Below, piece by piece: positions 12,998 through 56,760 of a DNA stretch of 64,000 nucleotides. The stretch is from the NCBI GenBank assembly GCA_964057225.1, contig OZ059895.1, positions 6,572,001-6,636,000 on the forward strand, read 5' to 3'. The DNA comes from Auanema rhodensis (Eukaryota > Animalia > Nematoda). The notes under the pieces are model-generated. The model was not told the origin of the DNA. It was given only the letters and a program-made list of their open reading frames with translations, and did not search any database. The position numbers were made by a program, and so were the translations under genes. Every line of letters starts with the position of its first letter. Positions within the stretch are counted from its first letter, which is position 1.

Positions 12998-13892
12998 CTA
13001 ATGTGATCCTTGTGCTTCGCGAACCTTATCTTCTATCTTCTTAATGTCATCTTTTAAGGTGGACTCCGTGTTATTATGGCTAATTCATAAAATCATTTAG
13101 AATTCTTGAATTAAATGAAAATTACCTGACAATATATTCATAATCGTTCACATCCGGCTCGCTCTGTTTTTCTTCGTCATGAGTGATCTTGAAATTATAA
13201 GCATTATTTTTCCAAATTTACTGATTAGTTGATACCAACCGTCTCAGTTTGGTTGCTGGAACTTATCGTACCGTTGCCAGATCTTAGATAAGCATCTTCA
13301 CCAAATTCTCTAACCAAGCCACAGAAAAGTGGAGAATTCTCTTTATTACAGATCTGATTCGAAACAGTGGAATCCTAAAAAAAATAAAATACTTAATTAT
13401 GTTACCAAAAGGCGGTAACTTACATCTAAACATTTGCAGAAAACATCATCGCAATGCTTTCTTCCAAGTTGGTCATCGTAGCATTTATCATGATGTATAC
13501 AACATTGGTTGATATTTTCTGAAACAAAGAAGATCACTGGAATGCTACCGAATCTAAGATCGCCGTAGCCAACAATGAAACATAAAATGCGTTAAAAAAC
13601 ATCTAGAACTTAATATTTCATAATATCTAGACAGGAATATTTAACTTACAGAGTAAATAATAAGAGAATAATTTAAAAAATTGTCTTTACTAACGTTTAA
13701 GAGCCGGACAATCGATTTCAACCTGATTTTCACTTATATATTTAGAAAAATCATCAGTTCCACATTCCCATTCGATCTCATCTTCTTCTAAATTATTAAA
13801 TAAACCCAAGAAAAAATCGAAAATTTACCATAATCTAAGTCAGTTGCAAAGATGATGGCAACTAGACAGAAAAGATATATCCAAATATGCAT
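12998..13892 (-). CDS. Secreted Cys-rich phospholipase A2-like protein
   Basis: Signal peptide MHIWIYLFCLVAIIFA, WECG, and the PLA2 motif NQCCIHHDKCYDDQLGRKHCDDVFCKCL with the His-Asp pair intact. Later FCGLVREFGEDAY; TAG at 12998-13000. Confidence 0.8.
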
Positions 13893-42115: not shown

Positions 42116-52953
<10,838 letters not shown>

Positions 52954-52959
52954 GTAGCA

Positions 52960-53019
52960 AGGGCGCCGATTGGCGGCAACTGGTGGCACGTTTGAGGGTT
53001 TGACGCCAATTGGTGCCCT
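52960..53019 (+). other. GC-rich RNA stem-loop immediately 3' of the mef-2 stop codon
   Basis: AGGGCGCCGATTGGCG pairs with CGCCAATTGGTGCCCT over 16 contiguous pairs, two of them G-U. Confidence 0.75.
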
Positions 53020-53471
53020 GTGTACCCAGCCTAGCTCATCTTTTTTCATTTTTTTTTGCATCAGGCAGAGCTATTCCTCGTTCTTAAGCGATATCTTTTC
53101 AAAGTCCATCCTCAGAAACGGCTAATTTCCATGCGCACCACAAAAACACGGTTTATCAAAATTTGAGTTTTTCCTTTCGATTCCCCGGTTTTTATGCGAT
53201 CCCGATTCTGTTTAAAACATCTATAAACAAAACATTATTACAAATATATAAATAAAGTTCGATACTATACGAATATATTATATATAATATAAATATATAT
53301 ATGATTGTGCTCTATAAATAAGTATCACAGAGTAATTATGATTTATCCCAATCCCCCAATCCTACTGTTTTTCCTCATAGGTGACCTCAAAAGTAGTTAA
53401 CGTTAATTCACGCTTAGAATGATTCTTTTTTCCAATTTTATATGCAATGTGTGAAATGATATCAGATGTGT

Positions 53472-53491
53472 AACAATAAAATTTTATTGTT
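53472..53491. terminator. Palindromic bidirectional polyadenylation signal candidate between convergent mef-2 and gei-17
   Basis: AACAATAAAATTTTATTGTT is its own reverse complement. AATAAA lies at 53475-53480 (+) and 53483-53488 (-). Confidence 0.6.
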
Positions 53492-53761
53492 TATCATGCT
53501 GAAAATTGAGGTATTTGTTACAGACAGATGATTTATCTATTAATCGATAAAGACGTCATAAAAAGATGAGATGCATATTCAAATGTTTAAAAAATGATAT
53601 ACAACTATTTGCGAGAATAGGTAGCCATTAAAAAACCGGGTTAAACTCTATATAAGTATGATACCCCGTGTCATTCAATCATACCAAACAATAAAATGAC
53701 CAAGTCAGTTATATAAGATATGACTACACGAACCGTCTATGATTTACAAGTATATTGTTCA

Positions 53762-56760
53762 TTATTTATTCCGAAAATCAGGGGCATAGCTTGGATCATT
53801 CTGCAAACTCTGCAACGCCTGAAGAGGAGAAGCTCATTCATTGAAAAAGGTAAGAGGTACCAACCTGGGCCAAGTTCATTCGACCGGTATCGTATCGTTC
53901 TGAGGGAGGAGGAGGAGGAGGCTGAGGTGGAGCTCGATACCCATATGCTGATGGAAACTGCTGCTGCCTACCTATGAAACTGTTAGGCGGTGGTACATGC
54001 TGAAAACTCATGCTGTTGGGAGGCATTCCGGTGCCGTTAGACCAAATCCCCGGTAATCTATTCATCTATAAAAATAAACATCAAACTACAATGATCTACG
54101 AAAATGTACCGCATTCTGGCCGGGCATCCCAAAAAAATTGTTAGGGGCATTGACTTGGGTCATACGAAACATGGGTTGTTCAAATGTCATATTCAGCCTA
54201 TGAGGTGGAATTGAATTTCCTCCCATCGTAGGAGCCGCCGTTACTGCTGGCGGCATGGGGGGAGGTAAGGGAACAGATGATGAGTGTGGTGCTGAAACTG
54301 GTTGAACAATTTGCCGTACAGGAAATTTACTCTGAAATATCAAAAAATATTTAATTCGCAGATAACACACGACATACAGATGACATAGGAATGTTATTCG
54401 GATTACTGGGACCTGGAATAATGCTCTGAGAAATTGTTGGACGTTGAACTGGTCGTGGAGGAGTATCATCCAATATTATTACGGAATTATCAGAACTACA
54501 TGGACTGCTGGGATAATTCTGCTTGCTGGGCTCGATTGCTGACATGATGGCGACAGAATTTTGTACTGCTCTCTGCATATCTACGTCATCATCATCGGAA
54601 TCACTTAACGCTGTAAGATCACGATAAATAAATTAAATAAAAAATTAAATTCTTACTAATGATATCATCTTCGGGTTTTGGTTTAGAAACTACAGTTGGA
54701 TTAGTAACAGAAATTGGTTTGTGATTAGTTTTGGTTGAAGTACTGGGACCCTCAAGAGATACAATATCTTCAGCGTTATCATCGCTACTAGATAAATCCT
54801 GAACCTGAAAGAAAAATAACAGTTAGTAAATAGCTGATAAATTCAACAAACCTCTTCCTTTATAGTTCGATAACCGCCATCACGAAGAAGTTCAACTTCC
54901 GTAACATTCCTGTCTACAGAATTCAATACATCCTCAAAATACCTAAGACATCTAACAGTAAATTAAAGTAATTGGGAAGGAAAAAAACCCGTCAATAATC
55001 AAATTATTATAATGACATGGACCGGAACAAACAGCACATTTCCATGTTGGTCTTTTCTCGTTCATATCCAAAAACAATTTCAAGTCAAAACATTGAAGAT
55101 GAGTACATTCTCGTCCTCGAGCTGGCAAAATCATTCTAATTTTGCCCAACTGAAATGTAAACTTTCAAAAAAAGAGAAAAAAACTTCAAACATACCGGAC
55201 AAAGTAAGCTCACTTTAATTTGTGATAGTGAGATACCATCATCATCGCCTGATAGCCTTCGAATAATAGTCTGTTTCGTAATTTCACTAGTCTAAAATAC
55301 ATTAAATTAAAATAATACACAACTAAGAAACAATAGCTCGTCATTTTTAAAAGAAAGTAAATAAATAAATATCTTTGAATTATACAATATCTAATGGGTT
55401 AATAAGAAATATATAAAAATAAAAATTAATAATATCTAAAAATATCTTACCAGTCGAACTGCACTATTCTCATTGGCACGATCAAATAAAATTTGTGATG
55501 TAACACGGCGAACCTAAAGTAAAATTAATATGTATGACACATTAAAATCTAGTTTACTTTATAAATTCCACAAGCCCATGTCCTTCGATCTGCACTCCAT
55601 TCAACTGATAATCTGAAAAAAACATGTTTAATTTCGATAGAAAAATTGCTTTTAAATATTCAAAATTATGAAAGAAAAGAACTAACGTATGAGGAACATT
55701 TATAGGTCTAGGAGGGCAGCAATATTGAGTTATATTCACAGGCCTTGAAGGCCTTTTAGGTTCAGCATTGGGTTTATTGGTGGGAATTACATTCTAAATT
55801 ATGTTTTATAAACATCAACCAAAAACAAATATACCGGTAAGACAACTACTTGATCATCTAATCTAACAAAGCAATTAAGGGGAAAATCATCAACTTGTTC
55901 TTGGGCTTGATAATCTCCCGTAATATTGAAAAACCTGAAAAAACAATTTTACAATCTTTCGAGGGAAAAAAATAACCTGAGCTGTAACTCCAGTCGGGGA
56001 AGGTCTTTTTCCCGTTTATCCTTGAATTCAAGTATGTCTGAAGCACTGAGACCAAAAGATATTAAATTTTTAACCTGAAAATTCCAAGGTTTCCTTGAAA
56101 ATATAAAAATCAGTACAGTTTTTATCGCTCCCATTAGAGGGGGAAGCTCAACAGGCTCCACAAGGGTTGCAATTAGATCATAAAATGGTAGTACCATCGG
56201 CCTAAGACCTTTCACCAGACGAAGCTAAAGCGACAAATTATAAACAACTAAAATTTCAATATGCAACCGAGTTCTGTTTGGGAGGCATTACATTGTGATT
56301 ATAATTTTGGGTAGGAGCTGTATATCCATTGTTCATTCGTCTGGACATAAAATAAAATAAAATAATCTTTTCTAACTCAAACGATATATATAAAGCAAAA
56401 ACTAAAACTAACTGAACAAGCTGCTGAGGGTAGGGAGCAGGTCGCGCAGGGGCAGCTCGTCTCATTAAGTCATCAACCTATCCACATTTTGAATTTCTCA
56501 GTTGTGAAAAACTCACAAACTTACCGTTGATACAAATTTCAGTTGAGAAGTAGGAGAATGTAATAAACTAACACACCGGTGAATAAGTTCTTGCTTTTTA
56601 CCCAATTTTGGCAAATTAAAAACTATTAATATGGACTGTAGTTCGTTTACCCGCAATCCAGATACTAAACTCTAAAAAAAAATTAAAAGGGTTAGCATAA
56701 AGAATGTTGCCGAGTTAGTCGCACTTCATATTTCAGTAAATCCGCTCGTGATAGTGACAT
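53762..56760 (-). CDS. gei-17: PIAS/Siz SUMO E3 ligase
   Basis: SAP domain (LRVNELQSIL...GKKQELIHR), LPFYDLIATLVEPVEL, ELQLR, PINIT motif KRPSRPVNITQY, SP-RING (CP..GKIRMILPARGRECTHLQCFDL...KRPTWKCAVC), and SIM/acidic segments. It ends PDFRNK-TAA. Confidence 0.94.

Follow-up and report, generated by a model that had tools for sequence, protein, structure and literature searches.

The stop codon of mef-2 in Auanema rhodensis is followed, after a short spacer, by a 16-bp stem-loop that folds on the sense strand, occurs once in the genome and is conserved in Auanema sp. JU1783. We tentatively interpret this hairpin as an Auanema-specific structured cis-element at the start of the mef-2 3′UTR, and as a candidate for post-transcriptional control of the gene. 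According to this interpretation, the GC-rich stem would form on the mRNA, purifying selection would act on its base and on 17 nt of the loop, and the distal stem would be free to vary provided that pairing holds. The stem would display the conserved loop motif to a trans-acting factor setting the stability or translation of the mef-2 mRNA, and the hairpin would be one among many conserved blocks of an unusually constrained 3′UTR. We infer that it may act through such a bound factor, and on the fate of the mRNA rather than on decoding.

MEF-2 is a conserved transcription factor of muscle and neurons. The window, by which we mean the whole 64-kb stretch of DNA that was analysed, encodes the nematode gene on its + strand, with MADS-box exons at about 42119 and about 48950, an exon 3 at 52150-52701 and, after an intron of 45 nt, a last coding exon at 52747-52950, the C-terminus of which matches the conserved end of nematode MEF-2. 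This end, W-R-x-Q-x-x-T/S followed by the stop, is fixed across nematode clades. In a protein search, exon 3 was 79% identical to the MEF-2 of JU1783, the next-best matches reaching 49%, and BLAST, pattern, protein and covariance-model searches found mef-2 to be single-copy in the genome. The MEF-2 model deposited for JU1783 (P0001) contains VGHRGN at positions 13690-13770 of its locus (L002), unlike the window and other nematodes, and the last intron of that annotation was probably mis-called. In C. elegans, MEF-2 has been reported as a miR-1 target, according to the summary of Simon et al. 2008 given in PMC4290612, and miR-1 is reported to control its level post-transcriptionally.

The UGA stop lies at 52951-52953 (+ strand), with G at position +4 (TGA-G, as in JU1783). 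A 6-nt spacer (52954-52959) separates it from the 5′ arm of the stem (52960-52975), which is followed by a loop of 28 nt (52976-53003) and by the 3′ arm (53004-53019). These positions agree with those proposed in the first-pass annotation, as does its description of both imperfect positions as G-U pairs on the sense strand: the stem comprises 16 contiguous pairs, and the sole non-Watson-Crick ones are the G-U pairs 52965:53014 and 52968:53011. Counted from the first base of the UGA, the first stem pair is at +10. After the stop, the reading frame runs on through 13 codons until it meets another in-frame TGA within the loop (52993-52995), and from there through 12 codons more to a TAG at 53032-53034; both distances had been given correctly, but the annotated end of the element, 53033, cuts through this third stop. 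The hairpin had further been described as GC-rich in an AT-rich UTR. The stem arm does have a GC content of 75%, but the surroundings do not fit this description, as the coding exon upstream has 51-64% GC, the GC-rich stretch runs on from it, and the UTR is AT-rich only from about 53150 onward.

The 60-nt core of the hairpin folds with -32.0 kcal/mol. For a 72-nt piece, none of 200 dinucleotide shuffles was as stable (z -3.7), and longer pieces gave z -2.5 (83 nt, -36.7 kcal/mol) and z -1.8 (101 nt). On its + strand, the window contains two stems of at least 16 bp, against 0.65 expected in shuffles; that of mef-2 is the only GC-rich one, the other being AT-rich low-complexity sequence. [quoted passage not shown] It falls to 0.03 when the coding sequence from 52780 is included as a competitor, a competition that is unlikely in a translated mRNA. 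Neither BLAST nor a pattern search nor a covariance model detected a second copy of the hairpin in the 181-Mb genome (112 contigs), and as it is single-copy by these three types of search, we rejected a dispersed or inverted-repeat remnant of a repeat or transposon.

The cross-species structural evidence comes from two Auanema sequences, the A. rhodensis window and the JU1783 locus, the latter being the one Auanema relative recovered by the protein searches. The neutral background between them is near saturation: at their 4-fold sites, exon 3 and the last exon are 43% identical. Coding identity is 51% at third positions and 90% at first and second positions, and the AT-rich middle of the UTR is 46% identical. 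Against this background, the hairpin shows a patchwork of conservation. The basal half of the 5′ arm is invariant, all nine positions of the block 52959-67 being identical, and the basal half of the 3′ arm is identical at 6/8 positions, with one of the changes turning a G-U into a G-C pair. Within the loop, a block of 17 nt (52979-52995) that includes the second in-frame UGA is identical at 15 positions, and the 3′ half is variable; JU1783 carries 9 additional nucleotides there, and because of the length of this indel its TAG, which aligns with that of the window, remains in frame. The distal halves of the arms have diverged to 33-38% identity. The spacer has kept its length, with three of its six nucleotides identical.

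Pairing has been retained to a larger extent than sequence in the distal half of the stem, where 6/8 pairs persist in JU1783 despite the divergence. Over the whole stem, JU1783 retains 13/16 pairs and breaks three; the pair changes include two double compensations (A-U replaced by G-C, and U-A by C-G) and three wobble-compatible single changes. When the partner arm was slid by 1-3 columns as a control, 22-50% of the positions were paired in JU1783. RNAalifold recovered a shared fold of 22 pairs for the two species. This consensus has a z of -3.3 against 500 conservation-preserving column shuffles, one of which was as good, and a structure conservation index of 0.65 against 0.45. Its energy is -22.6 kcal/mol on the sense strand and -11.4 on the antisense; the sense fold being so much better, this points to an RNA feature of the mRNA strand and not to a DNA palindrome. 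These results uphold the suggestion of the first-pass annotation that selection acts on the RNA structure, within the two species compared: pairing and spacing are kept, the sense strand is favoured and there is some covariation. With only two species, however, the covariation rests on two pairs. Folded alone, the JU1783 hairpin is interrupted and not significant (z -1.2). The stem-base blocks also contain or resemble a palindrome, since the self-complementary GGCGCC occurs in the 5′ block and, for the 3′ block, in JU1783, with GGTGCC, one base off, in the window; two copies of such a linear motif would pair by construction.

Outside Auanema, we compared four mef-2 post-stop regions. The stop codon is TAA in a strongylid transcript (L003) and in Ancylostoma caninum (L004), and TAG in two Mesorhabditis-type sequences (L005 and L006). 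None of the four has a significant fold after the stop or sequence related to that of Auanema, and a covariance model built from both Auanema hairpins found no match in them. Because these four outgroup sequences have no hairpin, it appears, within this sampling, to have arisen in the Auanema lineage; conservation across nematodes, which the first-pass annotation had raised, does not extend to strongylids or Mesorhabditis, with their TAA or TAG stops. In L005 (1009-1035), post-stop codons 3-6 encode R-A-P-I, like those of the window, from which they differ at each of the four third positions. As this stretch is absent from the close relative L006 and from the strongylids, we take it as probably a chance match rather than coding conservation. 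L005 also has a small 6-bp hairpin directly after its TAG, which is not found in the related L006.

The remainder of the mef-2 3′UTR (53035-53520, + strand) is 69% identical to that of JU1783 and contains many conserved blocks, the hairpin region, at 65%, being about equal to the UTR as a whole. Two of these blocks, TCCATCCTCA (near 53105) and AAAACACGGTTT (near 53143), are also found in the mef-2 UTRs of strongylids. Judged from such sequence comparisons, the conservation of the UTR, with some blocks reaching strongylids, points to dense post-transcriptional control. A palindromic AATAAA/TTTATT region at 53460-53505, nearly invariant in JU1783, is common to mef-2 and a convergent PIAS-type (zf-MIZ) gene, and likely marks the end of the mef-2 UTR. 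In the region of this convergent neighbour lies a weak snoZ5-like C/D-box match (54272-54382, + strand) of 29.6 bits (gathering score 60, E 0.047), which has no counterpart at the JU1783 locus.

A conserved loop on a distal stem that varies yet keeps pairing is the usual signature of a protein-binding stem-loop. In this respect, and in its densely conserved UTR, the mef-2 hairpin resembles iron-responsive elements, the histone stem-loop and Smaug or Roquin hairpins. It differs from them in lacking their loop motifs and sizes, having a 28-nt loop on a GC-rich 16-bp stem, and the loop matched no known motif or binding factor. A plain factor-binding site would leave the recoding-like geometry, a UGA with a 6-nt spacer and 16 bp, unaccounted for, which counts against such a site. 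With its first pair at +10, the base of the stem would be met at the mRNA entry pore by a terminating ribosome, so that factor binding or folding of the element is probably coupled to termination.

This geometry recalls known cases of stop-codon readthrough. The extended 3′ stem-loop class has stems of 12 or more base pairs that start 7-8 nt downstream of the stop codon (Firth et al. 2011, PMC3159437), and the 16 bp after 6 nt in mef-2 correspond to this description. Like the alphavirus nsP3/nsP4 UGA and those of Drosophila kelch and headcase, the mef-2 UGA has a stem of at least 12 bp a few nucleotides downstream, the base of which is more conserved than the distal part, with some compensatory change; the compensatory pairing, which comprises two double compensations among 13/16 retained pairs in two sequences, is absent in the four outgroups. 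In kelch, UGA-A is accompanied by a 14-bp stem, and in headcase the stem base is more conserved than the loop (PMC3159437). Since kelch uses UGA-A, a C at +4 is not obligatory. Unlike the alphavirus, kelch and headcase cases, which have long protein-evolving ORFs, mef-2 has 13 codons without a coding signature; its hairpin has G at +4 and a loop that is partly strongly conserved, and is known here from the sequences of two species. Sec redefinition elements and the hymenopteran readthrough element (Howard et al. 2005; Mariotti et al. 2015, PMC4561486) are also similar, in that a stable stem-loop adjoins an in-frame UGA, at which these elements disfavour termination. In contrast to the Sec redefinition elements, the mef-2 UGA is the ancestral end of the protein and not an internal codon, and its 3′UTR has no SECIS-like match, no Rfam SECIS family being found in 51000-55000 or at the JU1783 locus (E up to 1).

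Programmed readthrough, in which the hairpin, located at the entry pore of a ribosome that has the UGA in its A site, lowers termination at the UGA and some MEF-2 gains 13 residues before ending at the second UGA, had been the main proposal of the first-pass annotation, and we consider it unlikely. Besides fitting the class geometrically, the stem starts at +10, within the zone in which entry-channel residues contact the mRNA (+9 to +11; PMC13517186). Both Auanema species share the UGA, the length of the spacer, 13 codons free of indels and a second UGA at the same codon, and the 9-nt length of the later indel leaves the TAG in frame in both as well. The extended tail would finish in W-W-H/Y-V, conserved in both species, and six of the seven replacements within the extension are similar (V/A twice, I/V, G/A, N/D and H/Y), one being negative-scoring (G/V), with two synonymous changes; all four hairpin-less outgroups, moreover, use TAA or TAG. 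The extension nevertheless shows no sign of evolving as protein. Its identity by codon position is 10, 9 and 7 of 13, without an excess of change at third positions and unlike the 90% vs 51% of real exons, and its frame-0 BLOSUM score of 3.46 per codon was matched by 27% of other 39-nt UTR windows, with 12% matching it and lacking stops as well, so that its coding potential shows no signature above the rest of the conserved 3′UTR. A leaky context is a UGA or UAG, typically followed by C at +4; both species have a UGA, but with the purine G at +4 and with U or C before the stop (-1). According to a 2026 review (PMC13517186), release is favoured by purines at +4 and readthrough by cytidine, in keeping with the caution voiced at the outset that G in place of the leaky C weakens this reading. 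The extension has no counterpart outside Auanema, whereas the MEF-2 C-terminus is fixed across nematodes, and the tail has just 13 residues, without a recognised function. Taken together, the lack of a coding signature, the G at +4, the fixed C-terminus and the missing outgroup counterpart leave programmed extension of MEF-2 unsupported. Frameshifting was also discarded for this site, with no slippery heptamer seen before the stop and a +1 frame that stops within 1-2 codons.

The distal part of the stem carries a trace of its possible origin. Positions 52965-80, which cover the distal 5′ arm and the first loop bases, form a 14/16 out-of-frame copy, 41 nt downstream, of the ADWRQQ codons at 52924-52939 (+ strand), and are 13/14 identical to the JU1783 coding sequence. 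The score of this copy was reached by 6/2000 shuffles with the coding tail of the window and by 2/2000 with that of JU1783; a corresponding ADWRQQ copy is found in the window only, and not in JU1783. Perfect stems can arise and be repaired by template switching at replication, with no need for selection on the RNA (PMC8794818). Like hairpins of this origin, that of mef-2 has a near-perfect stem, an arm that resembles nearby sequence and apparently compensatory multi-base differences between species; unlike a recent neutral event of this kind, it has a stem base and loop conserved across near-saturated divergence. The copy also allows an alternative fold, 52924-36 with 52963-74 (-27.1 kcal/mol), which encloses the stop codon. 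This fold is present in the window and absent in JU1783, and was rejected.

From the copy, it could be argued that the hairpin is largely a mutational by-product of local copying and template switching, its perfect 16-bp form functionless and its conserved blocks linear motifs. We think that this is probably not the case. The arms are near-palindromic, and their copies can therefore pair in several registers; template switching is documented both to make and to mend stems (PMC8794818), the interrupted JU1783 hairpin is not significant alone, and the post-stop regions of strongylids and Mesorhabditis have no significant fold. The perfect 16-bp form may thus owe something to mutation mechanics, and the two compensatory pairs carry less weight than appears at first sight. 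Mutation mechanics do not explain the conserved stem base and loop block, however, which lie far above the 43% neutral level. The significance of the shared fold, the diverged distal half that still pairs at 6/8 positions, the wobble pairs favouring the sense strand and the identical stop-to-stem spacing in both Auanema speak against it likewise. A combination of copying and readthrough, in which an Auanema-born hairpin, partly copied from the last codons of the gene, drives low-level readthrough of the UGA and yields two forms of MEF-2, one with a 13-residue hydrophobic W-W-H/Y-V tail, strikes us as quite unlikely. A hydrophobic-x-hydrophobic C-terminus is of the type bound by class II PDZ domains. 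It is highly improbable that the hairpin serves as a dsRNA substrate, whether cut by Drosha or Dicer to yield a small RNA or destabilise the mRNA, or targeted by ADAR or Staufen, an alternative which the first-pass annotation had offered and which found no support. With flanks, its arms reach 29 nt at 76% complementarity with a 20-nt loop, which, with -36.7 kcal/mol for the 83-nt piece, is roughly the size of a pre-miRNA. Nematode pre-miRNAs nevertheless look different from a perfect, GC-rich stem of 16 bp that closes a 28-nt loop, a microRNA precursor having an imperfect stem of about 33 bp, and promiscuous ADAR editing or Staufen binding would call for a longer stem. Conservation is found in the stem base and the loop, and neither arm is conserved over some 22 consecutive nucleotides, as a mature miRNA arm would be; the genome has no second copy of the hairpin, and no Rfam family matched the hairpin, the window region or the JU1783 locus (E up to 1).

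Searches for known RNA classes were negative in both species. The absence of Rfam matches in the hairpin region of the window and at the JU1783 locus led us to set aside the known families considered (SECIS, miRNA and snoRNA), and a miRNA precursor or Microprocessor substrate was rejected on this ground together with the conservation that does not run along one arm. In JU1783, a 7-bp base whose ends lie about 73 nt apart suggested a tRNA-like structure; ARAGORN identified no tRNA gene in the window or in the JU1783 region, and this candidate was dropped.

These analyses favour, tentatively, a structured regulatory element at the start of the mef-2 3′UTR. Taken as it is, the mef-2 hairpin is an ordinary though well-defined candidate regulatory hairpin. 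If it did drive readthrough and a second form of MEF-2, a recoding signal would have emerged recently, and at a time that could be dated, in a transcription factor that is itself deeply conserved. It would then be one of the few recoding elements whose beginnings can be followed back, in part to a locally copied piece of coding sequence. As a candidate control element, it offers a concrete 60-nt target for dissecting how mef-2 output may be tuned in Auanema.
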